This document shows, in pieces, positions 22,005-64,000 of a stretch of DNA of 64,000 bases. This DNA comes from Lytechinus pictus (lineage: Eukaryota), in the NCBI RefSeq assembly GCF_037042905.1, contig NC_087247.1, forward strand, positions 37,138,001 to 37,202,000. Direction: 5' to 3'. Below the pieces are notes generated by a model. The model did no database searches and was not told where the DNA came from. It worked only from the letters and a program-made list of their open reading frames with translations. Numbering within the stretch: the first letter of the stretch is position 1; each line of letters starts with the position of its first letter. Both the position numbers and the translations under genes were made by a program.

Positions 22005-22129
22005 CTGGTGAGGAGGATGGCAGTGTCGTAGTGATGAGGATGACTGTCCTCCGCCTGGTTCTGCTGCTGTTGCCAGGTGCAGAAGTTCTTGAGGGTCGCA
22101 GGAGCATTGGAGGAAATGTGAGGTCCATC
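22005..22129 (-). CDS. ADAMTS9: ADAMTS9/20-like exon D: [41 protein letters not shown](R)
   Basis: Acceptor gatccttctgcag, donor CAG|gtatgt, 125 nt, phase 0/2. TLKNFCxWQ and [10 protein letters not shown] are conserved ADAMTS reprolysin-domain motifs. Confidence 0.96.
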
Positions 22130-23107
22130 CTGCAGAAGGATCATCAGATAGAAAGAATGATAATCCTAAAGATGGGAACAATCTTGCAAATAGGAACTTT
22201 TGATGAGCAGATGGTTCTTTTTTTCTTTCTTTTCTTTAGGTTTTCTTTTTCAAGTAGATATTGTTCAGAAAAAGTATACTGTCTAGTTAACCCCTCTACC
22301 TTCACTTCTATCTCATAATATAAAAAAATGACTGCCATTTACATCAGATTCACAAAGATGAATTAATATTTCTTTCTATCTCATAATATGATATATCTTC
22401 AGTCTTTCCTCAATATCATATTGCTAAATGAAGTAACCATCTTACATATTTGAATGGATTAATATTTCCTCACCGATGTTTGAATGGCAGAAAGATATAA
22501 CCTAGGATGACTAAATGTGATTTGAAAGATCAATTGAATTCAATCAAACTTATTAGGAATAACTAATTCCCAACCTTTCTTATCAAAGTTCCCAAATTCT
22601 TACTCAATGAAAAGATACTGTAAGTACTAGTTGTGATCCCTGAAAGTCTTGCAAGGAGGATGCAATCATCTCTTTGTTCTTTCCTTTCAATCAGTATGTT
22701 CAATGATGTGGCTGTTCATGAACTTCACTGATACACTCATCGTTTTTTCTTCTCAAATTTGCTGTCTTTCCTCAAGTTATTAATACCTTCCTCTCTGAGT
22801 GATGGCCCAAATACCACATCAGTTTCCTGCACAATCAATGGATGCCTCTCCATTTCCGACCAGCAAGGTGGGAACGGGATGAGGTGTTGTAAATACATCT
22901 TCACATTTTTAAAGAAATATCATGACTCAAGCGACAGATATATCGCTGCATCCCATAAGTCCATAATCTCATTCATGCCCAAGCTGAAACCATCAGCTCA
23001 CCACAACATAATTTTATCTCTTTCATCAAAGTGTTGAACTTTATTTGGACTGCCAATGGGATATGTGGGTTACTAAATTTGAGAGACATGCAGAGGCGGA
23101 TCCACTA

Positions 23108-23142
23108 ATTAAATCATAGAGCTATTAGCACTATGATTAAAT
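23108..23142. repeat. 21-bp near-palindrome between 7-bp direct repeats (putative transposon footprint)
   Basis: ATTAAAT-CATAGAGCTATTAGCACTATG-ATTAAAT. Confidence 0.6.
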
Positions 23143-23712
23143 CATGCGATCTGAATTTTGTTACATTTTACAATTTGATGTCTGCGGCATTATACCTTAG
23201 AGCATCAAGGCTCATCTAAAAAAAACAGGATCCTAAAGTAGCAATTAAAATAAATCTCAACTTATAAAACTTGCATTATTCAGGACAATGGCACATCTTA
23301 TTCTAAAAGATTTAATGTAATTATTTCATCTAGAGCACCTTGCGCAAATTCTCTCTGAAAAGCAGAAAAGAAGGCAGGTGAGTCATGTTTTTCCAATCTA
23401 TGATAACTAATGAGTAGCATTAAAACATGATAAAAAAAGTAATCATGATATAAATCCTCCGCCAGTCTCTTACACAAAAGCCTCCGTAGGATTAAAACCA
23501 TGAAAGATTAACTTTCATTTACCACCCAGGCAAAAGTCATTCACCACTCTGTTTTCTATATCATTTTGTTATGTCATTTGTGAATGAAAATTAATCTAAC
23601 TCAAATTGAATTTCATTGTTAAGCTTGCAATCAAACTGTAATTGGACGGATTTATATCTACATCATATTATTGAGGATTATATACACAATGCTTCCATCA
23701 TCCATTTTAATG

Positions 23713-23726
23713 GTCACCATGGTAAC
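23713..23726. promoter_or_regulatory. Candidate RFX X-box abutting the exon C donor
   Basis: GTCACCATGGTAAC. Confidence 0.4.
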
Positions 23727-23730
23727 TTAC

Positions 23731-23814
23731 ATTCACACTTTGTAGTATTCTGAGCTCCACTAATGTAACATTGATGGCATTGCCTATACTGGGATCACGA
23801 AATATCTTGCTGAC
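23731..23814 (-). CDS. ADAMTS9: ADAMTS9/20-like exon C: VSKIFRDPSIGNAINVTLVELRILQSVN
   Basis: Acceptor tttttcttatgacag, donor AAT|gtaagt, 84 nt, phase 0/0. Contains the ADAMTS DPSIGN-x-IN motif. Too short to appear in the ORF track. Confidence 0.95.
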
Positions 23815-24362
23815 CTGTCATAAGAAAAATCCATTAAACAGAGATTAGATAATATTACCTTCAAAATAATTGTTATAATAATAATAAATACAAATCAGTC
23901 AATATAATTCCTTTTGAAATGGAATAATGAATGTGAACTGCCAAAAAGCTGTTGCTATTGGGTTTTTAAAGATATATATCTCCATCTAAAAAAAAAATAA
24001 AGTATAAAAAAAAGCAGTGTGTATATACATATATATGTATATTTAAAAAGTTAATACTTATTCAAAAATAAATTATGCATTGTAACAAAAATGTGAATAG
24101 CCATTCCAATATACCTAACCTATATCTGCCAAACTAATCTCGATTAATTCCTTTACAAAGAGGTACCAAACTTTGCTATCATGGTAATTTATAGGGCCTT
24201 TCATGATATAGGCCTAATGCAAAATAATATTGACAAAATAAAAAAAATGTCTATAAGTATTTGGAGTATCCCAGGGACTTCACCAATAATTACCAGGAGT
24301 TGGAATTATTAATAAAACACATGAATGAAAACCATATACTCTTTCAATGATAAATGTATATT

Positions 24363-24402
24363 TCTTGACCAGGGAAGTGTTATAACACTTCCCTGTCTTG
24401 AC
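24363..24402. repeat. 26-bp perfect palindrome between 7-bp direct repeats (putative transposon footprint)
   Basis: TCTTGAC-CAGGGAAGTGTTATAACACTTCCCTG-TCTTGAC. Confidence 0.75.
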
Positions 24403-24801
24403 AGATATATGGAATTTTCGAGTACAGAAAAAACTACCCTTGCCCACTGCAAAGGCATTTTCGTGAATAGACCTAAATTAGGATTAAATTGGTCTGGTTA
24501 ACTTGTGGTCACTTTAGCTCATTAATCCTTATCGTTAGGCCAACACTTCTCTCTTTTACTCTCCCCCTCTTCCCTTCTCTCTTGCTGCGATCATTCGTCA
24601 TTACTGAACACACAATAGAGTGAGTCAAAGGATTGGGGGTCACCCTGCTGGTCAGGGGTTAATCCTAGAGGTCAAGATCTGTGTTAGCTTTGACCATGTG
24701 GGTCTGGAACAGGTGGTATAGCATGACGGAGCCACATGGTGCGAGTCGAGGAAACGTACTCTGCAAGACGTCCATCCTCATCAAACCAGCTAAGACCTTA
24801 A

Positions 24802-25383
24802 AGGAGAATGAAACTCTTGGAGCAAGTTAGCTTTTGTGAAAGCAGAAAAATCAAAGAATAAGATCAACAAAACTTTGAGTAAAATAGGACTAGCAATAAA
24901 AGAGTTATGAGCATTTGAATGTCGAGATCACTAATGCTATGGAGATCCTCCCATTGGCAATGCGACCAAGATCTGTGATGTCACACACGTACAACTCTCC
25001 CATTTGGACACTGAAAATATACCCCAAAACATCTCTTTTTGCTTATTCTAATCATATGACAAACGATTCATCAATGGTATAATGTTGTGAAAACTCTGTA
25101 CTTGTCATCTCATAAAGAGAACACCTCACCTTGTGATAGACTCTATAAAAGTGAGAATATAAGTGAAATAAGTACTAGAGTAATGAGGGAGTTGTACGTG
25201 TGTGATATCACAGATCTTGGTCGCATTGCCGATGGGAGGATCTACATGGCACTAGTGATCTCAATATTTAAATGCTCATAACTTTCTTATTATTCATTCA
25301 ATCTTCCTCAAACTTTCAACAATATGTTCTTTGATTTTTCTCTTTGATATGGATTCAGCTGGTTTCAAGGGTTTCATTCTCCT
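24802..25383 (+). mobile_element. Kolobok/T2-like MITE, family A, copy 2 (complete, 582 bp)
   Basis: TTAA|AGGAGAATGAAAC...GTTTCATTCTCCT|TTAA. TTAA duplication with AGGRR termini is typical of Kolobok/T2 elements. Long internal inverted repeat and no coding capacity. Confidence 0.92.
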
Positions 25384-25553
25384 TTAACTTATGTAAAGTC
25401 CTATAGATATGCATTGCAGACTAAAAGTCATACAGGAGAGTATCCTCTTGGGATATTGTTTGACATAAGATTTCACCATAAAGGTCCTTATTTTGACATA
25501 GATGTGTAACTTACAGGATGTACCTTAATGAGAAAGATGATGGTGTAGTCATT

Positions 25554-25841
25554 CGGTGTGTTTCTGCAGAGAATCGTTACAAATCGAATCGAAAACCGTA
25601 TCGCCCTTAAACCAACCTGTTTCTACAGAGCGAATAATCCGATTAACTCACATTCCGCATCGTAAATAAACGGATTAACAAGGCAATAACCACCTCCCAG
25701 AGGTGGTTATGAGAAACTGTATTTTGCGTGATGCGGTTTATCAATAAACCGCTTTGCGTCCGTTTCTACAGGGAAGTTTTCCGGAATTCTGGATAATTAC
25801 GCGGATATTACCGTTTAACCATTCTCTGTAGAAACATGCCA
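25554..25841. mobile_element. Harbinger-like MITE (~290 bp)
   Basis: TIR GGTGTGTTTCTGCAGAGAATCGTTA / TAACCATTCTCTGTAGAAACATGCC (21/25 match). ATT on both sides. Internal GTTTCTACAG repeats. Confidence 0.7.
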
Positions 25842-27910
25842 ATTGTTGGCTTAAATATATGTTCAAAATGGAATTTTCAAAATATAATTTGTAAAAACAA
25901 AGGATCCTATCCTACTAAAACTATATATATATATATATGGTACATTCCATTTCCTAGTAAATGAACAAAATCCTGGTTCAAATTAAACATTGCTGCAACA
26001 TTACGCTTTGAAAAAAAAGTTAAAAAGAAGTTTCAACCCACTTAAGTGTTTCAGACTGAGTATAGTGACAGGGCAAGTCACTTAGGAAATCTCTGGAACA
26101 GCAATTACAGATTTCATATTTGGGATCTACCCACCAGACTTCATTTTTTCAAATTGTCTACACTCATTTATTCACCTTTGTTAATATATGATAAATGACT
26201 TTGTCACTGTCCAAATACTGTGAGGTACAATATTGCAACACTTCCAAGTTTTTTGTTTTGATTTTACGCTGCATGGCCAAACAGTGTCTACTGACACCGT
26301 GGGTGAACCAGAGAACACCCTCAATAGGCAAACTTGTTTGTAATCAGAGTACATGGGAATGGAACCACTTAAAAATGATTTTCATTTCTGGGTCATCAAT
26401 TCAACATGTGTGGCGGATCACAACAAACTACAAAAAATGACTGGAAAACAGGCTTTGGGGGGTTTTCTCTTCTTGGGTAGAAGAACAAAAAAATAATTGT
26501 CATATTTTACACACTCATTGCTCTGAATTTGGGTTAATGTGAGAACCTTGTCACCTTATGGAATACCACTGTTTTGGGGAGGTTTATTTCCTTTCTGGTG
26601 CAAATATTTATTTGTAATAGTTATTACTCCCTTCAACTAGTTTTCAAAAGCCTTTCATCAAGACTATGCCATCTCGAATTGCTTATGAGCTGCACAAGTG
26701 TGAAAGACAGTGGAAAAGACCAAGTACCAAAGAAGAGACTACATGTAGAAGCTTGAGGGATGTCCTACTTAGCGTGTCTTCAGAGAGCAGGTATCTGATT
26801 TCCCACATGTAGGACTGCTTGGTACCTCTCATCTTCCCCTAAAACACTACCCAAACCAATCTCAATCAAGACCGATGACCCCACTTGACACATCGTTAGA
26901 CAAATTATGAAGTTTGATCTCTTTCTAAACTCACTCCACATTCCTTTCGCCACATCAGACATGAGCTTTGAAGGGGAAAAACGGAAAAGAATGGTGTCAA
27001 AAATTAAAGCCAGGTTTGGGGTGGAAAATAACAAAAATATCGCCCAGGTATACAAGACATCCCATTGGATGAACTTTGCCTTGGATGACCCGAGAGATGC
27101 AGTCCCAGACCAAGGGAAGATGGGGAAAGCCTCAAGATGCAAGGTAGGGGGTCAAGTGTTTTTGTGAAGTGGTTCTTACCTTAGGAAGGTAAAATATCAT
27201 GCGTGATATGCCATTCAAAATATTGAAAATAATTGAAGGCATTTCACATGAGAATGTGAGAATTTATAGCTTAATGACTTGACAGAGGTCAATTGAGGAA
27301 TGTTTCATTCACGGTTGGTTGACACGCTCTTTGGAGATGGTAACACTTGAACCAACCAACACAATTACCCTTCTGTGTAAGGGAATGTATTAATCAACTC
27401 AATGTGTGAATAATTCACAAATTTATCGATTTGTGACATAAAATAAAACAATATTTTAAAGACTAATGGTTTCTTTGCAATTCACCTGTGCTGGGTGCTA
27501 TCATTGATACTTGATTACTCTAAAATGACTCCTAAAAATTCATATTTTTTAACATTAACCTTAGCAGTTGATTAACGAGAATTACAAAGTTTCAGTTTAA
27601 TGATTCTGTCATTATTCAAATCTTTCTTGTGACATTTCCACAATCCTACAAGAGATATTCTTAAGTCTCCAACAAAACTGACAAGTGACAAACTGAAACT
27701 GACAAGCTGTAGAGTGATCAATTTAGCACTTGTAATAATTTTAAGGAATTCATGTGATCAAAGTCACACTGCAATATCATCTTTATGTTGTCCATGACAG
27801 CATGAAATAATTGTAGAAGTACAAAAAGTTTTCAATAAATTTTCAAATGTATAAGAGCACATAAAGTGCTATCATGCAAGAAGGGTATTGTCTACAAAAG
27901 TGGAACATAC

Positions 27911-28088
27911 CACTGCAACCAACGTCAAGACATAGAGTTGAACTCCTCTTCCATGATGTTCCACCATCTTATGATCGGCAACCACCATCATCTCCAGGTA
28001 TCTCTCATAAGAGATGAAACGTTTACCTCGATGATGCGGTCGGCTGGAATCTGTAGCATCCTCTGCATCTCTTTCTTTCCATTTGAGG
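27911..28088 (-). CDS. ADAMTS9: ADAMTS9/20-like exon B: furin site and start of metalloprotease domain, LKWKERDAEDATDSSRPHHRGKR|FISYERYLEMMVVADHKMVEHHGRGVQLYVLTLVAV
   Basis: Acceptor ttcattcatttttag, donor GTG|gtatgt, 178 nt. RxKR|F-x-SY-x-R-x-x-E-x-x-VVAD-x-x-M-x-x-x-HG...Y-x-LTL is the ADAMTS mature N-terminus signature, closest to ADAMTS9/20. Confidence 0.95.
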
Positions 28089-30828
28089 CTAAAAATGAAT
28101 GAAGAAAGAGGTTTAAAGGGATCGTTTAACATTGTGAGAAGCTGATTTAAAAAATTCTCAAATTAAGATGAATTATGTTTAAGAGTTTATGTACTTGTTC
28201 TAAGAAACCCTAGAAATCATCTTTATTTTGAATGAAAAGTTTTTAGTAGGTAGGAAAATGTGATTATATTAGAACTCGTCTACTAGACGATTTCCCAAAT
28301 TACTGTGACATCCCGATTTGAAAATAAAATTGTATGCCTCCCTCTGCGTTGAGATCGTAACGGACACGCAAGCGAGAACTGTCAATCAACCAATAGTGAA
28401 TGGGGGCAAGGCCGCTCCGGCCGGCATGCACTGAGAATTGTAAACATTACATGCAGCGCATGTTCTCTGCTGGCTCTTTTCTATAGTGCCTTGACGGTTC
28501 TAGTCGAAGCAGAGAAAGTAGTATGAAAGAAGAAAAACAGATTCTGATAGCGCAACGAAAGATATGTACAGACCATCTAAGATAAGAAAAATGCAGACTT
28601 ACTGACTCCTCGCCGGGATGGTAGTAACGTGGCAAATTTGGGGCGATGTACTTTAATATTACATGAAGATAAAGCGAAAGTGTAGCACCAGAATAAAATA
28701 TGTGCGATCCAGAACATCATACATGTACTTGAGAATAGAATAAGAACATGTGGTCTCTCGAGCTCTGCGTGTGTCGTGAGCTGAGGCATGGACCATGGGC
28801 ATGGCTAGCTAGCTGAGGGAAGGATGGCTTTATCCCATGCGTGAACGTTTCGTTGTTTATGTGGGTATGCAAATTACTTGGTATTACGTAAGACTCTTCC
28901 CATATCGCTCGAAAAATGAACATAATACAGGACATTCATTTTTAATTGTGCAGTCACATGATTATAACATTTCATTTATTCAAGACTGTTTCTCTAATGG
29001 GCCGAGCACCTTTTTGAGAGCAGTAGTCAAAACTTGTGTAGTAAATCTGCCGTATTTTACTCACGTATGCACTCCCTTCCTTTGAACGCGAGGTCCTTTC
29101 TTCTTCTTCTTTTGCTTGACAAATTTTTGGCGAAATACCTTTAGATTGTAAATTTTTAGATGAAAACCTTCTTTTTTTTCTTTTTTTTTTTCTTTTCAAA
29201 ATTTTCTCATGAATTGTGCCTCCTCCCTTTAGAAAAACCTGGATCCACCCCTGCACAACGTAAAGCTGTTCCCCCCCCCCCCTCCAACACATAACTGCAC
29301 AGCCCAACAACCAATGTATAACGAAAATTTTTATAATAATTATATAAAAAGATTTGGTGCAGCATAAAATATATAAAATATAAAGGTATATGCTGGGGAT
29401 AAAAAGGACATGAAAATAATTGCATTATTCTGTGGCCGGCGGCGAAAGCATAAAAATATTAGATTCTGGATTGGCGGTGTTCCGGCGGTGTTGAAGCATG
29501 ATCTTCCGCCGCCAGTGCCAGAATGTATAATTTTACGTACTTCGGGGGGGGGGGGGGTAAGAAATATTTCCATCCACATTTCTTCCACATCGGCTGATAA
29601 ATGCTTAATTATTATCATTTAGGGGGGGGTGTCCCATGCAACTAAAGTCTGAAATTTTAAGTACATCGTAGCTTTATTCTTTAATGATGCGAGCGCGAAG
29701 CGCGCAAGGTAAAGTTTATTTTTATATTTCGCCTTGAAAATAAATATAGGAGCGCGAACTTTTTTATGAACATGAACATCTTAAACGGGTCATTCTACTC
29801 ACTTTTGGTAATCACGCAGGGTATGTTCATCTTAAACAATTCGATTTGATTTATTGTTCTCGTAAATGCGTATTAGCATTTTCATAACAAAAGAAACATA
29901 ATATCGTTTAAAATTTTGGCATGAATAATAGAGTGTACTTATTAAAAATATGATTCAACCCACACACACCAAATGATCCACACCCAACATATTATGATAT
30001 TAACAATTAGCAGGATCGAGGATTGTCATTATAAGCACATTGCTTGGAAAAAAATAACTGAAAACCCGAGATTCAAACTTATTAAATTGCATTGATTATA
30101 CAACAGAATGGTGCGTGCGCGGAGCACGAAGAACGAGTTGAAAATTATTAATATTTTGACATGAAGAGCTGAATCGGGTCATTCTAATCAAATACGGTCT
30201 TATGGTAAGTATAAAGTTTATACGCCAAGCGAGCTGATATTTGTTGAAATTAAGATCTTAATACGAAACATTGTATAAACTGTTTTGGAATATTGCTGCA
30301 TATTTTCCTGAATAATGATAAGAGCGCATGTAAAACGCAAGCTGATTTTTAAAAAAGTATATTCGCGATTGATTTTTTTTGTATAATGATTTCTACTTTT
30401 TCTGTTTTCAAATCGTTCCTCTTTTCTTATTTCATTCACTTTTCTTCTTCTTATATCCTTTCTTATCGTTCCTCTCTATTTCCCCTTTCTCTAGGCATAG
30501 ATAGCAAAGCCCCAAGAAACTCCAGAATCCTGAGACGTCCAGATGGTATTTTGTACAAAAAAATGAAGTCACCAATCTAAAAATGTCACTTTAATCCGAT
30601 TTTAAAAAATGTGGAAAGACACATGCAGGGTTCGGCGACAGGGCATATAAAGTTTAGTAATAAAATAGAGAAATGCGAGTAAACGCAAAGAGTTGAATTT
30701 GAAAAGTTTTTCGATTTTATATTAAAATCCTACATTTTTATTTCAATAGCATGTTCGTGATATTACTTATAACCCCTTATAACATTGCATTATGAAGGGT
30801 TATATATAGATATTCCCGTGATGCACAT

Positions 30829-31107
30829 CAGTGTTTCCACTCCTCCCGAAATTTCGGGAAATTTTACCTTTTCCAGGAAAGGTTCCGAATGAAACAAATC
30901 CATGCAGGAAATTTCGGGAAATCCAAAGATTACAAGTAAACAATAATTAAACATAGCAACTGTCAACATTCATGTTATATTTTTAAAATTGTTTGCTGAA
31001 AGTTTCGGCTGGCTACATTTTTGTACAATTTTTGTTAAAATCAAACTAAAAATTATAGGAAATGTCTATAAATTCGAGAAGTTTGTTTTGGATCTGTGGA
31101 AACACCG
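30829..31107. mobile_element. hAT-like MITE (279 bp) nested in the 10.2-kb element
   Basis: TIR CAGTGTTTCCAC / GTGGAAACACCG. Perfect 8-bp TSD ATGCACAT at 30821-30828 and 31108-31115. Subterminal GAAATTTCGGGAAAT repeats. Confidence 0.85.
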
Positions 31108-32055
31108 ATGCACATGGCCTTTGTAAGCGGGGGTGCTAAATCACCTCCAAGATTTATATGGGGGTGATGTACAGGTTTGATCCAAACACCTTCATTTTGG
31201 TGCGGAAAACAAACTTTATTTTTGATTGTATGATTATTTTGCTTTAAATTTTAAGTATTTTCCTTTGTCAAAACTGCTATTTTGGTATTATTGGTTTTAG
31301 TAAACATGTGATATTCATCTTTTTCTTATTTTTATTTTCACATTTTTCCTTTCTTTTCTTTTTTCTTTCTTTCTTTCCCTCTTCCTTTTTAAGGGGGTAA
31401 CTACCCCACTTATCTAAAATTTAGGAGGGCGTGCCCCTTCCCCTCGCTTCCATTTATCGCTACCTTTCCCATTCCCTTCGTTAGTCTGGTAACCTTATTT
31501 CGACGTCAAAGAGTCCACTCTATTGTTCTACAACACAACGAACATGACTAAAGAAAGAAAATTGGGAGAGAGAAGTAAAATGAAAGGATCTGAAAACGAA
31601 AATAAAACGACGTGTGACCAGGTTAAATTCTCTTATTCACAAAGTGCAACCCTGGACATGGAGGAATGGGGGGTCTGAACATGTGATTTTTGAAATCTTG
31701 AAATGAAAATCATTACATCATTATGGAATATAAACAGGGGAAAAGACAAACAAGAACATAGCAGACATTTTCGTTTCTAATATTAAAATGTCCTTTATTT
31801 TTTCTCCTATTTCTTGTGTTGTCCAAGGTTGGAGGTTGGTTGCTAGCGACCCCCTCCCTTCACGCTAGCGCATTTACACACTGACGAGGCGGATCGGAGA
31901 GATGAAATCATATATCTCCAGAATGGACGATGAAAAAAAATTAAAATTATTGAAAGGGGGAGCGGGAACGCTATAGATTATGCCTATACCTGCGGCCCCC
32001 TAAAAAAAATGGAGACGAGGGAAGTGGGAGGGGCGAGTAGCGTATAAGTTCTAAG

Positions 32056-32133
32056 TAATGATAATAATAGTAATAAAATAATATAATATATATATAGCAC
32101 ACGTGTCCATCTTGTTAGGTGCTCAAGGTGCCC
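32056..32133 (-). mobile_element. L2-type 3' tail remnant (LINE or tail-sharing SINE)
   Basis: Reverse complement GCACCTTGAGCACCTAACAAGATGGACACGTGTGCTATATA plus an ATT-rich tail parallels the L2 tail at 34580-34680. Confidence 0.6.
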
Positions 32134-33300
32134 ATGTATTATTATCACTGCTTGATTCGTGTGATCAAAACGAACATACCTATAATCCTTTATTTGAGCC
32201 CCTCCCCCGCGCAAACGAAAAACACTACGAACTTCCACAACCATGCAAGGGAGAGGGGGGGGGGGAGAAGTGGTGTTCATTTTCAAAAGTGATTATATTA
32301 TTTTATTTTTTGCTCACGAGCTACACTCCATCGTAAATGTTCAAAATGTTTGTCGGTATAGCCCTTGATTCTACAAATGTATATCGGTAACGTGTACCGA
32401 CGTCATGAGTCTTGGAAGTGTTCAACACTCTCCTCAGTCACATTTTCTTCCACCATACCCAGGGCAGTTTTTTTTTTTTTGGGGGGGGGGCATTATTCAC
32501 GTTATTATTTATTTATTTATTCATTTTATATTAGAGGGCTTGACCTAACTAAAGATCGAAGTTCTAATACAGTCTTATCTTACCTTATCTCATGAGGTCT
32601 AAATATATCACATGCAAGCTAAATTTATTGTATATTTTTATTTAGAACTGAGAATTGAATATTCTGGGCAGTTATTGTAATCATGAAGAAGATGCGTATC
32701 TAACGAAAAGATTCGTGCGAGCGCGAAACACAGAAGTAATTTTTAATATACTCACCTACAAAAGTATTCGTTTTGCAGTGACTCATGAATGTACATGTAA
32801 TACAAATCTCACCAATCAATAAAATGCGAGAGCGAGTTGTACATTTTCAATATCTGGGACTAAAAAATGTATATTCGAATCACATTTTCAACCATAAATT
32901 GGATGGATATATAAGCATAACTTTATGATGCGAGCGTGCATGAAGCGCGAACAGAAATTCTAATTTTCCGCCCGAAACTCGGACAATCTAAGCACTTTTT
33001 CTGTCATGTACAATATGAGTATTATTGAGAACTGAACATGTTAACCACGTTTTGAAATCATAACCAGGATGAGTATGTAATCAAACAATTAATGCGAGCG
33101 CGAAGCGCGAGCTGATTATTATTTTTTTAATTCAGATCTAAAAACTGGAAAGTTCAAGTCCGTTTTTTATTTAAAGAAGAAACGTCATATTAGAGAATTA
33201 GACGCGAGGTGATTTTCCCCCTAGATTTAGACCTAAAACAAGACATAAAAAGCAATGGAACCATGAACAGAATGGCTATATATAAAAACTCTCCTTCACA

Positions 33301-33371
33301 TATATATATATATATATATATATATGTGAAGTTATACATGTACATGTTATACATATATACATGTACATGTT

Positions 33372-33402
<31 letters not shown>
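33301..33402. repeat. Compound (TA)n microsatellite
   Basis: Two TA runs separated by TACATGTACATGTTATACA repeats. Confidence 0.9.
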
Positions 33403-33405
<3 letters not shown>

Positions 33406-33473
33406 CTCAACAATCGATTAGAGCGCGGAGCGCAAGCTGATATTTCTTCCGACATGAAAAGTGGACTTTATTA

Positions 33474-35091
33474 CATGGCGTATCTAGCCGGGGCGGCAAT
33501 GGAGGCACGTGCCCCGGGTGCTACTTTCAGTGGTGCAAAAACGGGAGATAGATGCAAAGAAAGAAAGGGAAAAAATGAATAGAAAAAGCAAAGGAATTAA
33601 GACGCTGAAAAAAGGAATACCGCTGACGGTAATACCCCCGTTCTCTGTACCATTAATGCACTTTTCAACGTAAAAAAATAATCTTGCATGTCTTTACCCA
33701 GGGATGAATATTCGTGCAACTTTTAATTAGTGATATACTTATATTCTCTCCATGAATTCCAACAAACACTCCTTATAAAAAAAAAATAGTTTTTCAAACT
33801 TAAATGTCATAACTTTTCATCTATAGCTACGAGTTTGCATTATTTTTATACCTTTCTTTTCATTAATTCTTGCAAACAGTTCAGAAATATAATTTTCTGG
33901 TTTGTAAAGGCTTCTCACCACGCTCTGATTTTGATGAGGGAGATAAAAACTCTCCATTATACATTTTTAGGTGAGGATATACAAAATATCATCTCGCGCT
34001 TCGCGCTCACATTAGGGCCTACCCCGATGAGATACGTATCCTTTTCATGAATTCCTACAAAAAACCCCTAAAATTATCCATGCTTTGATTTCCTCCCGTT
34101 TAGATTTTTCAAATTAACCTCCCGCAAAAAGATTGGACAAAACTTCAACGTCTACAAAACTCTGCTGCCCGTCTCCTAACATACACTAAAAAGTATGACT
34201 CCATCTCGCCAATCCTCCAGTCCTTACATTGGCTGCCTGTTGATAAAAGAATCTCCTTCAAAATTATTTTACTATTATTCAATTTATTCTCTCTTCCCCA
34301 AAATATCTCCGCAGCTCTATCTCAAAATATCAGCCTTCACGCAGTCTCCGCTCATCATTCTGATGCTCTATTGCTCCAGACACCCAGAACCCGACACAAA
34401 TGGGGGGATGCATTCTCTGTTATAGGACCAAATTAAGCTATGGAATCGATTGCCTATCCAATTACGCCATATTTTCATCAACAGAAACATTCAAGTCCCA
34501 GTGAAACATTCAGGAGAATTCAAATTCTATTCTTTTTCGTTTTCTATTGTTGTTGGGTGTTGTGTTTATTTTTCTACAAGCGCCATGAGCACCGAAAGGT
34601 GGACGCGTGCGCTATATAAGAAGCCACCAATTATTGTTATTATTATTATTATAATTATTATCATTATCATCATTATTATTAAGATTTCCCCTCAATATTA
34701 ATTTTTCAGCTCGCCCCTCGTGCTTGCATGAAATGCTTAATTAGACAAGCATCGATATGTCCCGATTGTAGGTCTCAATATCAATAATTTTCGGCTCGCG
34801 CTTCGCGAATGCGTTCATTGTCTGGATATGCATCATGTTAATTATTACAAAAAGTGCTTAGAATATTCCTTTTTAAGATCTTAATACTGAAAATAATAGG
34901 CACGTGCTTAGCGCTCGCATACGTTGTTTTCGTTAGATACGCATCATTTTCATGATAAAAAAACCCGGACTAGAATATTATGTTTTATTTTGACTGGTCG
35001 AGTGCAGAGTATATACACAAAAGACCTATATTTTGAAAGGGGTGCGATTTTAGCACTTGCCCGGGCCTCGTTTGTTCTAGATACGCCACTG
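33474..35091. mobile_element. Nested ~1.6-kb TIR element with CA(G)TGGCGTATCTAG termini
   Basis: Left CATGGCGTATCTAG...GGCACGTGCCCCGGGTGCTA and right TAGCACTTGCCCGGGCC...CTAGATACGCCACTG. It brackets exactly the block where the GCGCGAAGCGC repeats are reversed. No clear TSD. Confidence 0.6.
34073..34680 (+). mobile_element. 5'-truncated L2-clade LINE (ORF2 C-terminus, 3' stem-loop, (ATT)n tail)
   Basis: Frameshifted translation IIHALISSRLDFSN / KLQRLQNSAARLLTYTKKYDSISPILQSLHWLPVDKRISFKI / YQPSRSLRS / KLWNRLP. 3' end CACCGAAAGGTG...GCGCTATATAAG followed by an ATT repeat tail. Confidence 0.9.
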
Positions 35092-38050
35092 TGGACATGA
35101 TGGACATTAAATTAAACAATGCGAGCGAATAGCGCGAGCTGAATATTATTATGGCCCGACAACTGGACATTCTAAGCAGGTTTTTTTAATGTAAATATCA
35201 AAGTATATGTACCTCATCAAACAATAATTGCAAGCGTGAAGCACAATAAGCTATTTTTTACATGTAGACATAAAAACTAGACATTCCTTTTGCACTTCTT
35301 GTAATAATGAATACGAAGGGTATATCATGCTCAACAATATATTTTTTTTAAATATGTAATTGATCATGACTGGACGTTGTAAAACAATAAAGAACAAGCT
35401 GTTTGTAGCGCGAACTAAATTTACTGACATAAAAGTGAATATCTTAAAAGCGCTGCCCAACACGTAAGAAACTTGTGAAGATGATAATGGAACAGTCTGA
35501 ATGATGCGAGCGCGAAGCGCGAGCTAACAATTTTGGCGACTGGGACATATGGCCGGGCAATTTTAATCACTGTACGTAAAAAAGAATGGGCTTGATTGTA
35601 AGGCGATTTAGACCTAAAACCTATATACATTCAAATCTCTCTCGGAACATGAAGCAATTAATTAGAACCGCCCTGTGTGACAGTATATTCTAATCACTGT
35701 CGGTATAGCATATATATACACGGAGTAATGGAACATTCCTTCGTGACCCAACAGTTATATCATTTTTCCGGTAGGCGTCAGTCCGACAGCCTCTTTTCTT
35801 TTCATTTTTTTTCTTTCCTTCTTCCACTTTTCTTCTTTCTCACTTTTTCCATTCTCACTTCTATTTTCCCCCTCTCCCCCTTACCCCGACATGGGAAGGG
35901 GGGGGGTCATACCCTGTTAGAGACGGCCTTTTAATATCGACGGAAATACAATTATACACGAATTTAAGTGTATTGTTATGTGATAGTTGTGGTGATGATG
36001 TATGACTAATTGTTCCATGGAATTTGAATGTTTCAGTGATTGGATCGAGCAGAAAAGGGAACTTTCGTGATTGATAACGTGTGACTAATTACACTATTTC
36101 ATTTTTCATTATTTTCCCCAAATGAATGATATCATGAGGATATATTATTTTACATTTGTTTTATATTGATTTGTTATACTCGTATTTATTAGAAATTTTC
36201 ATATTGTAATGCTAATTTAATTAATTAATTTTTAGGGACCCCGGGGAAGAACAGGTTGGCTATCAATAGCCAATCTGAAACGGGTCTATCCCTACGATTA
36301 TGTATTACATGCATTGTAAGCTTCATTACTGTTATATTGTTAATTTGTTATATTGTTTTTTTTTTATTATTTGATTATGTAATGTTATTTTGTTTATATT
36401 TATGCATTTTTTTAATCGTGAATATAACCAACCAATATAAACAATACCAGATCGAAGGTAAAGGATGCTTCATATACGCTGAGGTTTCATATAAATTGTA
36501 TGAAGAAAATCAATAACCAATTTACAGGTTTTCAGGTAAACGAGCTAGAAAAGAACACAAAACACTATTTTCACGTAAGGTTCATATAGTAATCAGGGAT
36601 GTGTAAAAAAAATCAGACTTCTTTTTTACTGTAAAGAATTTACGGAAGGAGGATCGAGAGAGGGGAAGCAGAAGAAAAGAAAAGAGCGGCCGAAAGAAAT
36701 GGAAAATGTAAAAGAAAAGTGATATGATTTGAAAGATGTCATGAGCGGATTATATGGCGGAGAAACTGAAAGAATTATTGACCCCAATCATGGATAAAAT
36801 TAAATACGATTCCTACCCCTTACAAAAAAACCATTCAAATAAAAAAAATAAAAAACCAACAAAGTTTATGGATAATAATTTGTAGGTCTAATAGTCATTA
36901 TAGTCCGGGGTCTAGGAGTTGAGATGTTTTGGGTTTGCAACAACCCTATCTACCACGTTCCAAAATAAAGTCCAAAACGGATAGGCCCCGATCGATCGGA
37001 GGGGGGGGGGGCAATACGTTGATCATGTTGATCATATAGTTTCTCCCCGGGAGTTTCTCATAAGCATCTTACGTGAGATAGGCCTACCGAAGATTTTGAT
37101 GGGATGGGAAATCCGGGATGGGAATATCTTTGTTGGGGGAGCTCGTGGAGAACGTAAAAACACACACACACACACACAAAAAAAAACCACGATGGTGGAT
37201 GTTTCCATGCCAGGGGGGGGGGGGGGAAGGAGAGGTCACTGCCTTTATTCCGAGTTCCTACCCAGCTATGCCCCGTGCATGTAAACATGCACATGACACA
37301 CGAAGGCCTGTGACTACGTGGACGTAACATGACCAGAGTGGAGTTCGGATACATATTACAGCTCCATGATAGTGCATTACATGGAGCTATATTGCATTCT
37401 CTTCTCGAATCAGTCGACGGACGTTTGCTATATCGTGACCAGGTAAAAGAGAATTATCAACAACCACAAGGATATATCTTGTAGTGCATGCAAAGGTAAA
37501 CTAAAGAAAAGAACAGAGGGGATTTTTTTTTTTGGGGGGGGCACAATATAGCTTCTGGAAAATCACGCTCCATCCCCGGCCCCCATGATCCACAAAAAAA
37601 ACTACTATTACTCTACACTGTAGATCCGAGATTGTATTTGTAGCCCCGGTTTGTCGCGTTCTTTTCTGTTGTTGTCGTTTTATTTGCTACTAATTTACGT
37701 CGCCAAAATATAAATTCATCAAAATCCCATGGTCTGTAAGTCTACAAAGTTCATTATGAGGCATACATGTAGCATATTCAAATGTACAGACGGGGTACAG
37801 ACCACAGACGGAATGGACATTCACGAGTTCGACACAGTTTGACAGTATGATCATGGACCTATGATATTCCCCCAATGTTATGCACAAGCGACACACACAG
37901 CTAGCTAAACACCCTTTCACACAGTACAGGCAATAAGCAACGCACATGCATCGATCGCTTATCGCACACACCGAGCGGAGACACAGAAAAAACCCAAAAC
38001 AAACTAACTTCGCCCACAGATCACGCAAGAAGCGAAATTCCCCGTGGTAA

Positions 38051-38090
38051 GCTCCGCCTACTTTCTTGCATACATCACAAGGTGGCGCTA
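38051..38090 (+). promoter_or_regulatory. Candidate CTCF site plus adjacent GC-box in the right arm of the 10.2-kb element
   Basis: TCACAAGGTGGCGCTA (38075-38090) is close to the CTCF core CCASYAGRKGGCRS. GCTCCGCCTA (38051-38060) is an Sp/KLF-like box on the minus strand. Confidence 0.45.
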
Positions 38091-40132
38091 TATAATATCG
38101 ATTTAAATTTGAAACAGAATCATGAATCAACCGTCGAGAAGTGCATTTTTCTCTTCAAACATTGCCTCAGATTTTCAGTTTTTAAAAACACTTCCCGAAC
38201 ATGTTATGATCCCAAACTTTCACATGGGTATTTTTGAGCTGTTAGTCAAATGTTCATACCATTTTCAAAAAGCAATATGATAATTTTTTAAATTGCTCGC
38301 AAAGTGAAACAATCCCTTTAAATTTATGATTAATGGATTCTATGATAATTGATACAGTGACAATTGCTATGAAAGAAATTCTATGCATCAAACCAAACAT
38401 AGATACTGACCTCATACCCGATACTAACCAATCACATTCTGATTAACCAAAATACAATCACAAGCTATACCCTAACCATAACCCTGACAATAACACTACA
38501 CTTTAAAAGCTACAGTGTTAAGAACGACACCAGTCAATGTGCTGAGAGTACTACAACCTCAGGTGTACAAAATATATGATGGGGTTTGTATACAACACCA
38601 AATAGTGCTTAAATAACAAATAACACCATGCATGATTAATTTTACACGAGCATGAACTGCTTACTGTGGTACTCAGTGAACACTTGTGGAGTTTTGATGG
38701 TCATGGACTGTATTCAGGAGCAGAGGTTTGGTAATCAATTACCAAAAACTTGCTTATTGTGTTGAAACAGTTTCTTTTTTTTTCAGATATTAAATCACTT
38801 AATATTCATATTGTTTATGTTACTACAATTTAGAGGTTACATTAAGTTAAATAATTCTAGTATTTAAAACAAAATAACATCTAAAATGGCTATCCAATTA
38901 ATCTAAATGGTGTGTTGAAAATGTGTCAAAATTATTAGTGGTGTACTAAAATTTATAGCATGGCTGAACTTGAGAACATACACTGGTAGCTTGTGACTTC
39001 AGAAAATGCACACAAACAAGCCAAAATCTATTCAATTTATTCATTGTGATTTCTGTTCAAAGAGAGACAAATGTTTAAATAACATACATAGACCTATCCT
39101 GGCATTGGTTCTGAGGTGCTAAAGCCAAATATTGATATTTCATACAAAAAAATGTTTTGTTATTGCAATGCCATAATTCAACATTTTTGTTGACACCCCA
39201 CTAGGGACCATTCTCACTGACAGTGAAATATTGCTGTAAAGAGGATATATCTATTTTCTTCCAATAGAGACATAAAAAGCGTATTAAATAAAGCAAGGGA
39301 AGCAGGACTTAACTTACAAGTCCTCTAGCATTATTTTTATTGGTAAATTCAGTAATTTTTAACTGCTTGAATATTTATTATGACATCCAACACAAGATCT
39401 TGTCTTTCATAAGTTGGTACAGTTCAGCGCATGAAGCACATGCACGAAAGATCAAAAGTTTCCTGGCAAGCTGATTTATACTGGTATTAAGTGAATGTGA
39501 ACGCTGACTTCAAGAAATTTTCAAAATTTGAAAAATTGAGCAATATTTGCAGATGAGAATGACCCTACTGAATGAGCGTTTCAGTGAAGAAAGCAACAAA
39601 TGCAGGAACAACGGGGAATGTCAACCAGCAAGTGAGTGGTCTCGAGGTGGGAGAAATACAGTGGCTTAATCACAGCCCAATTATATTTTGAGTGTTAGGA
39701 GGGGTTGGCAAAGTCTAAAAGATTAAAAATGACAAAGATGAGAATTTAACTTTGAAATTGTCAGGAAGTGAAGCGTTGCTGATGGGAAAGACCTCCTCCT
39801 GAGTCTGACAATGACTTGACTTTTCCTTCACCTTACACTTGAAATACCAGATATTTATATCAATCCTACAAACAGTCCACCTCTAATGGGTATACATTAA
39901 TGTCAGTAAAAATTCTTTGACAAGAGTTCCAAAAAAAAGGTGGCCATGAAAACAATACGGTAGCAAAATGTAACTTCAAACTTGTTTTCTATTCACAATA
40001 GCAGGGGAGCATATAGCCCTTGCATGGCTCAACATCATTACAAGCGCAATAAATACTTTTTTGAAGTAAATATCTTCAAGTAAGCCTAAGAAGTTATTAA
40101 AGTTTTAAAAAAATATAGAAAGGGATATAGGC

Positions 40133-40135
<3 letters not shown>

Positions 40136-40176
<41 letters not shown>
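40136..40176. repeat. (TA)n microsatellite
   Basis: Direct reading. Confidence 0.95.
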
Positions 40177-40178
<2 letters not shown>

Positions 40179-41497
40179 CTCTAAATAAAAAAAAATTTAA
40201 AATAAATTCAGACTGACTATAAGTATAGTGACTAGAAAAACTATGGGATCATACTAGCTTTAAATCTCGAATGATTGAATTGAAATCAGCAGAGCACATA
40301 ATCATACCATGCAGAAAGACTCCTTTCAAAGCTGCACTTTACATGTACTTTATTATGACATGAAAAAATATGTCTGTTGTTGGCTTGATGCAAGATGCAT
40401 TTACATGTAATCAACTGCAGTGGGGTCCCTGGATTTGGCTCGAACAAGCTTCATATAATTCCATGTTTTAGGAGTTACACACTGCGCACCCCAAAATTGA
40501 GAAAATGGGATATAGGCCTATATCTGAATATGAAATATAATATAAAGCAGTATATCAATATCCAATCAATTACTACCAATCAATTAATTTATAGTGGTGA
40601 ATATCATAAAACTATAGGCCTACTTCTATAAGGCATAGGCTACATGTAGTAGTTGAAGGATATGTGCATTTTTTGTTTTTGTTTAATTTTTTTCAGTTTC
40701 AAATTCAACCAACATTAATTATAAGTCTGCATTGTGACATCAGGACCCTGCACAATACAAACAAAGTTCACATAACACACAGGAGTCAAGTGTTGATTTA
40801 TCACAGTAGGTTATTGCCTTTTGATTTCCTCACACAAATTATGTTTGTCCTGCATTCCAGCTTATTTTTCATTAGTCTGGATGATACAAGGAGAAGCATA
40901 CTATCAACTTTCATGATCAAGAGGCATTTACCCATTAGCAAACAAAATTGCATGTTTTTAAATAGTTTCAACACCTTGTAGAACAAAAAAGGTATACATT
41001 TACAAATAGCTTCAGACCTTGCAAAGCACATTTGGAGTGCAAACCAATTAAAGGCACAATGAATTAAGTTCTAGATTTGAACACTATAATGAACATGATA
41101 AGTGATAATCATGGATTTACATGGACAAATAAAACATGAAAATATTTCAAAATGAATGCATTCTTTCTGCATGAAGTTTCAATATCACACTGCTTTTGTT
41201 AGAGCACAACGGACAATCAACAAACCTGTCCTTGAATTATGGGAAGGTGACTCTAATCAGAAGCAAACAATCAAGGGGAATTTGCATTTTACACTTCTAT
41301 AATTATTTCCGCTATCTGGAATTGAATGTTTATAACTCCATGATTAAATATCAATATATTCCACAAAAACTGTAATACCAAAAGGAAACCAGCAAAGCTC
41401 TGGCATATGAATGACATAAGGTTGACACTTTAAAATGCTGACAACAATAAATTAGTTTGAATTAGGGGAATAATCTTGGATTGAATCTGTAATCTAC

Positions 41498-41588
41498 CTG
41501 TTTTGTATGCTTTGAAGAAGTCCATAGACCTGGCCAGCGAGACCATCAGGTGTAGATGAAGAAGTTGGAGCTTTCACAGGCTCATCAT
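41498..41588 (-). CDS. ADAMTS9: ADAMTS9/20-like exon A (late prodomain): (x)DEPVKAPTSSSTPDGLAGQVYGLLQSIQN(S)
   Basis: Strong acceptor (ttatttttcttttcag) and donor (CAG|gtagat). 91 nt and open. The phase-2 end (AG) joins the phase-2 start (C) of exon B to give Ser in frame. LAGQVYGL resembles my recollection of the vertebrate ADAMTS9 prodomain motif LAGDVAAL. Confidence 0.75.
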
Positions 41589-43063
41589 CTGAAAAGAAAA
41601 ATAAAATAACATATAGAATTTGATCAGGTATAAGAATGGAATTGTAAACCTGGAACCTTTTGCAAATAATGTCAAACTTAATATTCATACTTGTAGTTAA
41701 AACCGGTAAATCCCCAATTTCCTCTCTTCTTTATCTTTGTGTAAATACCAGAAATATGGTATAATTATTCTTCATCCCTCTTGTGATCTCTCCACACCAA
41801 AAATGAATGGTTTTTAAGTCACAAAAAATTATGTAGGGTATCATTTCATTTTATTTCTTTTTTTTTCATCTCCCTGCAACTTGGTGTTTGACAAAATATA
41901 TGAACCTAAACTGAATAAAAGAATATCCAAGAAAATCTGAAATGAAGATATTTCAGACAATTTTGTCAATGTAATTATCTTATTATGGGCTATTGCGTCA
42001 CTGTCACTTCACTGTTTTGCTAGCTATCAAATTTCCAAAGTCTAATTGGCCCTTATTATAAATTTCATCCATTTATATTCAAAATAAATTGAAATAAGCT
42101 GTAGTTAGAGACCGGCTGAACATGGATATCATATCAATGAAATCCTTAATAATTTGAAGATTTGAATCTAAATCATTCAAAATTTTGAGTCATATCTTTA
42201 GGATTGAAAATAAATCTAGAGTTAAAAATAATAGGCGATCTGGATATTTTGAATTCCTATTATTCAAATTAGCTAATCACATTGAAACCTCTTCAGATTT
42301 GTCCTACTATTCTTTATTTCTTCATCTGTTTATTTTGACAATTAGCTCTTGACAGATCTAATTAATCCTTTATCCTCTAAATGTCAACACCTCATAATTG
42401 CTCTTATCTATGCAGACATCATACTCAATGTACCCTAGGGAAAATAAGACTGAATCATTCTTATATAACCTTCGCTTCATGGACTTACAATGACTGTACA
42501 TAACATCAACAACAGGTTTGTGATTTGTACGTCCTATATAGGCGCCAATGAAATTGAAAATTTATGGTCCAATGAAAGTTGAGACTGTGGATTTCAAGTT
42601 TTTCTCTAAAATTTACCAGAATTCATAACTTTCTCATACCTTCTTTTTAGGGTACACCTGTGAAGTGGTTATGGTCAATCTACAGCTCAAAATATATCAT
42701 ACACAGCATCTTTTGCTAACATTATTTTCATATTCGAAAAGATATATGTACTAACTCAAATTTGGTCCATTTTCATAAAAGAGACCCTCGCGCTATGTAG
42801 TGTTACCAGGAGTAAATATTTTCCACAAAACAAATAAAATCTTACATTTCAAATACTAAACACTCAAAACATCTTAAAACACATAAACTCACACAACAAA
42901 TATCATATCATCTTTCATTATTAGTACAAAAATAAATATATTCGTAAATAAAAATATTCGGCCTGACCAACACTCAAATTCAATATAAATCTATAACACT
43001 TTCTGTCAACATTCTTATATGCACTGTTGCTCCTGAGGAGGGAGAACAGAGAAGAATCATATG

Positions 43064-43077: not shown

Positions 43078-44730
43078 GAAACTTGATCAGAGGAAGGGAC
43101 CCCCTTACTCATCTTCTGCTGGCAATCAAAAAGGTGATTTTTTATGAGGAACTTGGGTATATGTTACTTTTCCCCAGGAGTGGCTGGCACCAAAACATGA
43201 ATGGTCTCACCTTGAATCATGGTGATTTGATTAACTTTGAAGTGTATTGTTCCTTGGCATGATGTTTAAATTTTCATAGTGTTTTAAAATAAAGGTGTTT
43301 AGTTACACAGTAGGTTTAATAAGCTGTTAATATAAGTGCAATATTTGAAACCATTATGTTCATTAGATAACTTGAGTGCAATGACCACAGACCAGATAAA
43401 TGCTTTCCCTTTTTTGTCAGTACTTGGTGTCGCTTGACAAGGTGACCTTCTATGAATGATGTGCCAATTCTTATCTCTTACCACTTCATTGTAACTCAAA
43501 TTTGTAAAAAGGATCTAAATATGAATAAAGCATTATTTTTATAATAAATGACCTTCAATGATGTACACAAATTTTAAAAAAATATTCGAACAAAAAGTTT
43601 TGATGTTATATTGGTAATCCTTCATTCAGTCAGACCACTTTTATCATAAGTTTTTTTTTCAATTGATCATTTTCAAATGCACTGACCCCAATCTATATAG
43701 CTGCCATTACCAAGTACCATATAAAATCTACCGATTGATAATAATGCCACATCATAAATTCAGTAAGCCTTGATGTAACTGTGAATTTCTTTCCAACTTC
43801 CGTGAGGGATTTTCCTGAATGTAGGAACCAACTGAAGAAAGATCATGATTCTAAACTGCATGAACTCTCCATTCCTAGACAAGTGGCACATCTGCCACAT
43901 TAAAGATTATTCATTTTTAAAAGTTTGAACTCACAGTCAGACAAAAAGAGAAAGTAATTATGCCATAAAATACAAGATGTGATTTGAATTACAATATTTG
44001 TCAATGAAATTAATGATTAAAATGTCAATTTATTTCAAACATCAGGTCCCAGAAAAAAAAGGATATCTTATTATAATTCTTTTTTAGAGGGGGGGTAAAA
44101 ACACTTCTCAATGAAGGAATTTTAAGTTCTATATCCATGTCTGCAACATGGAATTTGAAAAAAATATTTTCTAAATAAATTCCTTCAACAGGAAAGTAGG
44201 CATACAGGAAAATACAATTCTTTTTAATGAATCTGTCAATGAAAGGTGATATAATGGACATCACACTTCTGTAGGAGTGGAATGGCAGAAAAAGGGAAAA
44301 TAGAACCACACTAAAAAAATAATTCCCTGATAAACCTTTACCAAATTTTAAACAGGCTTTAACGGACAGCAGTCCTACTGAACTTGATAGGGTGGATGAT
44401 TCATACTTTGGTTACTTGTCAACCTCATTTTTCATCAGGTCTTTGATGCTGGTGTCCCCACGTAGCAGTGTAAGTGGGAATGGACACCTGTAGAGAGGGG
44501 AATCCTCAGGGTGGCATGGGGATTAGTTTCTAGATCCATTCACCTGTCTAGTCTAACAACCATCCCTGCATATTCTTGATAACAAGGTCACTCAGGTGGT
44601 ACAGGTTTACAAGGTTCTGATCAAAATGCATGACAGGATGGAATTCTATATAGAACATTGTGAAGCAAGCATTAAGCAATATTGCACAACTAGTCGTTTG
44701 AGAAAGGTTAAATTGTATTCAAAACCCTAA

Positions 44731-45313
44731 AGGAGAATGAAACCCTTGAAACCAGCTGAATCCATATCAAACAGAAAAATCAAAGAAACATATTGTTGAA
44801 AGTTTGAGGAAGATTGAATGAATAATAAGAAAGTTATGAGCATTTGAATATTGAGATTACTAATGCCATGTAGATCCTCCATTGGCAATGCGACCAAGAT
44901 CTGTGATGTCACACACGTACAACTCCCTCATTACTTTAGTACTTATTTCACTTATATTCTCACTTTTACAGAGTCTATCACAAGGTGAGGTGTTCTCTTT
45001 ATGAGAGGACAAGTACAGAGGTTTCACAACATTATATCATTGATGAATTGTTTGTCATATGATTAGAATGAGCAAAAAGAGATGTTTCAGGGTACATTTT
45101 CAGTGTCCAAAAGGGGAGAGTTGTTCATCTGTGACATCATAGATCTTGGTCGCATTGCCAATGGGAGGATCTCCATAGCATTAGTGATCTCAACATTCAA
45201 ATGCTCATAACTCTTCTATTGCTAGTCCTATTTTACTCAAACTTTTGTTGATCTTATTCTTTGATTTTTCTGCTTTCACAAAAGCTAACTTGCTCCAAGA
45301 GTTTCATTCTCCT
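44731..45313 (-). mobile_element. Kolobok/T2-like MITE, family A, copy 3 (inverted relative to copies 1 and 2)
   Basis: Reverse complement of copy 2 with scattered substitutions and the same TIR. Flanks are CTAA and TTTT, so the TSD is imperfect. Confidence 0.9.
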
Positions 45314-63961: not shown

Positions 63962-64000
63962 TTAACAATATGCATTGCTCACACTCATTAGCACATTTAA

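Follow-up and report, generated by a model that had tools for sequence, protein, structure and literature searches.

A 10.2-kb TTAA-flanked insertion, probably a non-autonomous Kolobok-type transposon, in an ADAMTS1-like intron of Lytechinus pictus

In a stretch of 64,000 nucleotides from the genome of the sea urchin Lytechinus pictus (contig NC_087247.1, positions 37,138,001 to 37,202,000; the whole stretch is called the window from here on) one intron of an ADAMTS1-like gene carries a block of about 10.2 kb, which we consider, with a probability of roughly 60%, to be one large, young, non-autonomous cut-and-paste transposon of the Kolobok/T2 type that moved to this place as a whole. The block has matching inverted termini with a TTAA on either side, has no coding capacity, differs sharply in its CpG content from the DNA around it and is absent from the orthologous intron of Strongylocentrotus purpuratus. 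From these observations we infer that a transposase of the Kolobok family mobilised it in trans, that its donor site was unmethylated and that the insertion is recent.

Termini of the block and the orthologous intron of Strongylocentrotus purpuratus

On its left side the block is preceded by a TTAA (28113–28116), followed by a terminal inverted repeat (TIR) at 28117–28164 on the plus strand that starts with AGGGA and thereby shows the motif AGGRR. On the right side the corresponding TIR (38274–38317, minus strand), whose reverse complement also begins with AGGGA, is followed by a second, identical TTAA (38318–38321), as can be read directly from the sequence, and we take the pair as the target-site duplication (TSD). 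The left boundary reads ggt-TTAA-AGGGATCGTTTAACATTGTGAG and the right one CTCGCAAAGTGAAACAATCCCT-TTAA-att, so that the element itself is 10,201 nt long, plus the duplicated TTAA. An inverted alignment of the termini, which are about 48 nt long, shows 19/24 matches, a 4-nt gap and 18/20 matches, reproducing the TTAA-flanked termini about 10.2 kb apart that had been claimed in an initial annotation of this DNA, and the similarity between the ends fades past about 50 nt. When each 56-nt end was scanned against the whole 64-kb window on both strands, each turned out to be the top non-self match of the other (local score 42; runner-up 28), and BLAST of the end pair gave E=2.5e-5. A degenerate 26-mer derived from both ends occurs at only these two sites in the window and not once in 100 shuffles. 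The ends differ at four positions within their first 26 nt, and two of these mismatches, one per end, are of the CG/TG type, which fits a CpG-containing consensus end that has slightly decayed.

The initial annotation had considered that the two ends might belong to independent short MITEs (miniature inverted-repeat transposable elements), each with a partner end of its own nearby. This does not apply within the window, where neither end has an inner partner in either orientation, and a composite of two complete MITEs was rejected because no inner ends exist anywhere in the window. Further copies of the ends were likewise found neither in the window nor in the 28.7-kb S. purpuratus locus described below nor in the JGI metagenomes.

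When the exon adjacent to the block was compared with 1.8 billion representative proteins, XP_054751596.2 (P0002), recorded as ‘A disintegrin and metalloproteinase with thrombospondin motifs 1-like [Lytechinus pictus]’, was found. The host gene is an ADAMTS1-like gene, encoded on the minus strand of L. pictus chromosome CM073228.1. Its exon A ends at 41498 and its exon B, encoding the furin site RGKR and the start of the reprolysin domain, lies at 27911–28088 (minus strand). The intron between them (28089–41497) has a length of 13,409 nt, of which 3,204 nt are left after subtraction of the element and one TTAA, just as had been proposed when a ~3.2-kb intron was said to have grown to 13.4 kb.

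The S. purpuratus ortholog (P0155, 86% identical; locus L002) has an orthologous intron of only 2,788 nt versus the 13,409 nt in L. pictus, and both introns are tied together by five collinear blastn anchors that bracket the block. The first four connect positions 10041–10575, 10781–10950, 12058–12384 and 12439–12616 of the S. purpuratus locus with positions 41600–41081, 40881–40712, 39949–39613 and 39198–38994 of the window, respectively, and the fifth connects 12912–13125 with 28107–27895 on the other side of the block. The anchors closest to the block are 9 nt away from the left TTAA and, on the other side, 672 nt away from the right one. The gap between the last two of them measures 295 nt in S. 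purpuratus versus 10,886 nt in L. pictus, and nothing in the 28.7-kb S. purpuratus locus matches the block. The collinear anchors together with the missing block identify a lineage-specific insertion, and it is firm that S. purpuratus lacks the block in its orthologous intron. The proposal of a single TIR-bounded, TTAA-flanked insertion is supported by this comparison, while the opposite outcome, a block present with intact synteny in an outgroup, was not observed in S. purpuratus. Furthermore, the reconstructed empty site, which would have the form GAAAGAGGT-TTAA-ATTTATGATT, aligns with S. purpuratus over the junction. This species has TTTTAATC there and reads GTTTTAATC, with a TTAA that lies at most 1 nt from the aligned position, its distance to the splice acceptor being 26 nt, which is suggestive of an exact empty site.

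One could also think of an artefact, namely a chance inverted repeat that happens to border a misassembled or chimeric 10-kb segment, as the block is seen in one assembly only. The public locus L001 of P0002 (GCA_037042905.1, CM073228.1) agrees with the window at every one of the 21,001 nt compared (100% identity); it is thus the same assembly and supplies no independent allele. Nevertheless we regard such an artefact as highly improbable, as the two ends are reciprocal best matches with the E value given above, are flanked by TTAA and coincide with both boundaries of the CpG content. In addition, the intron minus the block approximates the length found in S. purpuratus, its flanks are collinear, and no match to a plasmid or vector was found for the block.

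CpG content and arrival as one unit

Between positions 28117 and 38317 we counted 342 CpGs where 344 are expected, resulting in an observed/expected ratio (o/e) of 0.99 (95% interval 0.89–1.10), and the values for TpG (1.02) and CpA (1.06) reveal no deamination footprint. The ratio stays between 0.83 and 1.21 in all ten 1-kb sub-blocks, and the non-coding interior or ‘cargo’ (28165–38273) with its o/e of about 1.0 shows no footprint of methylation. In contrast, the remainder of the host intron has a CpG o/e of 0.21 (TpG/CpA 1.39/1.38) and the next intron one of 0.42; outside the block TpG/CpA amounts to 1.2–1.4, and no other 10.2-kb segment of the window exceeds a CpG o/e of 0.40. The change falls within 100–200 nt of either terminus, which bears out the abrupt switch between the termini that had been noticed before. 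Over its whole length the S. purpuratus locus is poor in CpG (o/e 0.20–0.48), and the gene region is a long-term methylated, CpG-depleted compartment in both urchin lineages.

The flat ratio of about 1 extends over the subterminal parts, the repeat arrays and a fragment of a long interspersed nuclear element (LINE) inside the block, and this argues for a shared history outside methylated DNA and for a joint arrival. It also fits the earlier idea that nested elements, the LINE fragment included, gathered in unmethylated DNA and moved as one unit. In our proposal the ~48-nt inverted termini were recognised by a Kolobok-type DDE transposase that cut the entire segment out of its donor site; this enzyme would have been provided in trans, by an autonomous element located at another place in the L. 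pictus genome. The segment would then have integrated at a TTAA that lies 24 nt upstream of the 3' splice site of the ADAMTS1-like exon, duplicating this TTAA. The interior would have been passive in this process, with the LINE tail, the hairpin-core repeat arrays and the microsatellites being assembled before the move, presumably in DNA that is unmethylated in the germline. Such an assembly, together with an insertion too young for decay, would explain the full CpG complement.

A different history would start with a Kolobok-type MITE of about 0.6 kb that settled at the TTAA and grew to 10 kb afterwards, as further insertions landed in it, so that the block never moved whole. Four TTAA/AGG elements of about 0.6 kb share the window, the interior does contain at least one nested retroelement fragment as well as dispersed repeats, and the similarity between the ends stops early, all of which would agree with such growth in situ. 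However, an older resident backbone should resemble the MITEs with their CpG o/e of 0.16–0.46 and should not show the flat values of the sub-blocks. Moreover, no comparable insertion rich in CpG is present in the other 3.2 kb of the intron or in the 4-kb intron next to it, which makes it unlikely that about 9.6 kb landed in a target of at most 0.6 kb. A complete TSD-flanked nested element was not found in the block, and the LINE piece lies within a repeat array and not within a MITE backbone. We consider growth in situ rather unlikely.

It is also conceivable, if improbable, that the insertion is older and has been kept free of methylation as an epigenetic island, a regulatory domain or a nested non-coding transcription unit, in which case its CpG content would be uninformative on its age. 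A CpG o/e of about 1 with TpG and CpA close to 1 and without a deamination footprint would be expected here as well, G+C is elevated in the sub-block at the right end (0.41; 0.45 in 37001–38000), and the insertion age is bounded solely as younger than the split from Strongylocentrotus. On the other side, the block gave neither a coding nor an RNA-family signal, and its TSDs are intact, in contrast to an older MITE copy in the window (44728–45315) with decayed TSDs and lost CpGs. Gene-body methylation in invertebrates furthermore generally spans the transcribed unit (compare PMC3827831).

For a young transposon that arrived whole an age can be estimated under two assumptions of our own, that the block has been methylated since its insertion and that methylated CpGs decay 10–15 times as fast as other sites. 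Under these assumptions the data allow a CpG loss of at most 11–26%, which corresponds to less than about 1–3% neutral divergence and is below the 5% between the two copies of the MITE just mentioned. The insertion is probably young, although we think it unlikely that it is young enough to be still polymorphic in L. pictus.

Superfamily assignment and Kolobok-like neighbours

Kolobok elements are described to produce TTAA duplications and to have 5'-RR..YY-3' ends, in contrast to piggyBac (PMC9587614), and the Kolobok-related T2 MITEs combine TTAA with a terminal AGGRR (PMC6004289). The block shows TTAA at 28113–28116 and 38318–38321 (a palindrome, with one copy of the element known), has the ends 5'-AG..CT-3' and carries AGGGA at both of them, and thus has all three hallmarks of the Kolobok/T2 group, in agreement with the Kolobok-like ends claimed initially. 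Membership in this superfamily is suggested by these hallmarks and by the genomic context, not by a transposase. The same combination of TTAA duplication, 5'-AG..CT-3' ends and AGGRR is found in the Xenopus T2-MITEs and XKol elements (PMC6004289), and the amplified repeats inside the block are reminiscent of Xmix and Xstir from the same work. The large size of the block is not exceptional, as ten full-length frog Koloboks with AG ends span 6.7–13.9 kb (PMC6004289, Table 5) and the block falls into this range. With its 10,201 nt it does not belong to the MITE class (under ~0.8 kb, high copy number), being 17 times longer than the T2-like MITEs of the same window.

KolobokP families, for example KolobokP-1_LyPi, have been published for L. 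pictus itself (PMC9587614) and have host species, superfamily and a 4-nt TSD in common with the block. They possess long terminal direct repeats (LTDRs) of 450–660 nt, each with short TIRs, and the terminus GGGTGCACGCG, whereas the block has neither. Its identity with KolobokP was rejected as its 500-nt ends share no 10-mer in direct orientation, and the L. pictus KolobokP LTDR terminus is absent from the window. A Polinton/Maverick was rejected as well: this class has a 6-bp TSD and long TIRs, but next to the block, if its ends are taken as AG..CT, two different 6-mers are found (GTTTAA versus TTAAAT), and no domain of a protein-primed polymerase or an integrase was found in the open reading frames (ORFs) of the block.

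We also weighed whether another TIR superfamily could be responsible, be it piggyBac, a different TTAA-targeting group or a TA-duplicating, Tc1/mariner-like element with AAGGG..CCCTT ends. As TTAA contains TA, a 2-nt duplication is compatible with a single copy, and the resemblance of the block ends to frog Kolobok ends is weak. Yet piggyBac shares only the TTAA target and has the ends 5'-CCC..GGG-3', to which the RR..YY ends of Kolobok have been contrasted (PMC9587614), so that the block with AGG..CCT does not belong there. Together AGGRR and TTAA are the published T2/Kolobok signature (PMC6004289), and Kolobok-like MITEs surround the block, one of them having AGGGAT.G in common with it. An origin from another superfamily appears quite improbable to us.

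These neighbours were found in a window-wide scan for TTAA-flanked inverted ends with at least 13/16 matches, which gave 8 TTAA-TIR pairs versus 0–3 in shuffles. The distinct elements are the block, three MITE-like elements (24798–25387, 54894–55482 and 63353–63965) and a foldback structure (15800–16140). The first MITE (590 nt, CpG-depleted) has TTAA/AGGAGAATGAAAC ends and arms of ~210 nt, and a decayed copy of it, inverted relative to it and 95% identical, is located at 44728–45315. In this copy, which the scan missed, the TTAAs have decayed and 4 CpGs are lost relative to the 24798 copy. The second (589 nt, CpG o/e 0.46) is flanked by TTAA and has near-perfect TIRs of ~60 nt starting with AGGGATGGTCCG; it is the one that shares AGGGAT.G with the ends of the block. 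The third (613 nt), also flanked by TTAA, has the ends AGGACAAGTCCACACC and AGGTCAAGTCCACCCC. With 13/16 identical positions in each case, the ends of the 24798 family resemble those of the frog Kolobok subfamilies A2/A4 and the ends of the 63353 family the frog Kolobok A3 TIR, showing that Kolobok-type elements have been active in the L. pictus genome. All these ~0.6-kb elements resemble the block in their TTAA target, their AGG start and their location in the same gene region. They differ from it in length (589–613 nt), in their CpG depletion (o/e 0.38, 0.16 and 0.46) and in lacking any similarity past the first 8–10 nt. The 9-mer TGTGACATC, located ~190 nt from the left end of the block, resembles a motif of the small MITEs at equal offset, but it has the opposite orientation and was taken as a coincidence.

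The foldback is layered, consisting of two palindromic units of ~58 nt (TTAA-CCCCGTACTATAGGTGGGGC...GCCCCACCTATAGTACGGGG-TTAA) that flank a segment of ~170 nt with inverted ends of its own, all within outer inverted flanks. It falls into a CpG-rich patch (15401–16300, o/e 0.75). Other short CpG-rich patches (o/e 0.71–0.91) in the CpG-poor gene region are located at 3601–4500, 20401–20900, 25301–26100 and 57501–58400 and may be further young insertions.

Several points weigh against the block being a young Kolobok that moved as a whole. With a single known copy there is no family consensus that would fix the true ends or the TSD, and the palindromic TTAA could belong to the inverted repeat or mask a TA duplication. 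The 16-nt ends match those of any frog Kolobok subfamily at just 7–9/16 positions and are unlike the published terminus of L. pictus KolobokP. Neither a transposase gene in the block nor an autonomous partner with the same ends was seen. The recency presupposes that the block is methylated in situ, and the 100 nt directly upstream of the empty site align weakly with S. purpuratus (p ~0.035 by shuffling).

Interior of the block, host gene and biological meaning

As regards the interior, all 40 stop-to-stop ORFs of at least 60 aa were compared with Pfam and none of them contained a Pfam domain, in line with the earlier statement that no transposase ORF is recognisable. We know of no Pfam model that is specific to the Kolobok transposase. 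The longest ORF has 154 aa compared to 110 ± 17 aa after shuffling (about 2.6 standard deviations above) and is located in a TG/CA-rich stretch. As for RNA genes, Rfam gave only weak, low-complexity miRNA noise at a TA repeat. There are no tRNAs in the block, and its interior shows no similarity to the other 54 kb of the window.

The sole protein homology inside the block belongs to a 5'-truncated 3' fragment of a LINE, a non-LTR retrotransposon, at 34070–34686 on the plus strand. The ORF at 34104–34433 has 25 homologs, of which P0163 lies directly downstream of ORFs with Exo_endo_phos_2 and RVT_1 domains in locus L003. The LINE tail, the end of an ORF2, was placed at 34070–34430 by tblastn, and an ATT array follows at 34630–34681, with the (ATT)17 tail ending at 34686. 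Neither an endonuclease nor a reverse transcriptase part is present in this fragment. It is surrounded, in both orientations, by at least 7–12 diverged copies of a ~100-nt unit with the hairpin core GCGAGCGCGAAGCGCGAGC. Copies are found on the plus strand at 29683–30190, 32633–33441 and 35118–35525 and on the minus strand at 33959–34014, just upstream of the LINE fragment, and at 34706–34979, downstream of it. The hairpin core is confined to the block, with 7 matches at up to 3 mismatches where 0 are expected. A (TA)n microsatellite and a 23-nt minisatellite occupy 33297–33404. The description of the block as repeat-dense is thus correct in part, applying to the ~100-nt repeat family, the microsatellites and the one LINE fragment. 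Runs of 8–15 G or C are about 3-fold enriched in the block, which contains, between 29271 and 37541, 9 of the 17 such runs in the window. Some of these come after a CCATGC-like motif, one also at 1473, and motif and runs together may represent a small dispersed repeat family.

Like the carriers of the Pack-MULE type the block is a non-autonomous TIR element with foreign ‘cargo’ as its bulk. However, this cargo consists of repeats and a LINE tail instead of host gene fragments, and the superfamily is a different one. The suggestion of a ‘Pack’-type element, a carrier of captured gene fragments, is consequently not supported. Similarly, an undescribed family of cargo-carrying elements did not emerge from the window, the S. 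purpuratus locus or the JGI metagenomes, in which no copy besides this single one was found. The block adds to a known kind of element and is not a new kind, as large Koloboks rich in non-coding DNA have already been described.

Several observations concern the host gene and its records. The public locus L001 is without any N while the window shows N at 17730–18018, so no assembly gap exists in the public record. In both urchins the model of the ADAMTS-like gene is short (174 aa in L. pictus, window 21971–41598, minus strand; 219 aa in S. purpuratus, L002 10001–18763) and enters intron sequence at its C-terminal end. A zinc-site motif of the HExxH type (regular expression HE.GH) was not found among the ORFs of at least 30 aa in the window. 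Possibly the gene is truncated or its annotation incomplete. Among L. variegatus gene models none of comparable length turned up, and the long ADAMTS representatives all come from other animals. The ENA ‘metagenome’ ERZ26222911 (P0001, P0151–P0153, P0162) includes sea-urchin-like contigs, one of them 6.5 kb long, with the same ADAMTS exon, which shows 86% amino-acid identity across the matched part; its urchin-like contigs also hold the LINE tail family of the block.

At its left side the insert is located very close to the 3' splice site of exon B, with 24 nt of intron (ACCTCTTTCTTCATTCATTTTTAG) between this site and the left TTAA, and the NCBI model joins exon A to exon B despite the insert. 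Beyond the 24 nt upstream of the acceptor, whatever the intron contained would have been displaced by 10.2 kb through the insertion, while the polypyrimidine tract beside the acceptor would have been retained. Any branch point farther upstream would now have to come from the TIR, a candidate being CTCAC about 47 nt upstream. The locus is therefore a test case for how splicing tolerates the replacement of a branch-point region.

The insertion itself is an expected kind of event. Nevertheless, it offers a clean and datable example of a large DNA transposon insertion within a methylated invertebrate gene body, in which the CpG contrast of 1.0 versus 0.2 delimits the insert to ~100 nt and argues that 10 kb travelled as one piece. 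Should the insertion still be a polymorphism in L. pictus, a species under development for genetics, this would indicate that Kolobok elements are mobile there today and that their transposase can carry 10 kb of unmethylated intergenic DNA into a methylated gene body in a single step, to within 24 nt of a splice acceptor. The block might in that case also be the first of a family of large cargo-carrying Koloboks. The dated insert would then provide, within a laboratory model urchin, a natural experiment on de novo gene-body methylation and CpG decay, and would give a handle on the speed at which gene-body methylation spreads into new DNA.

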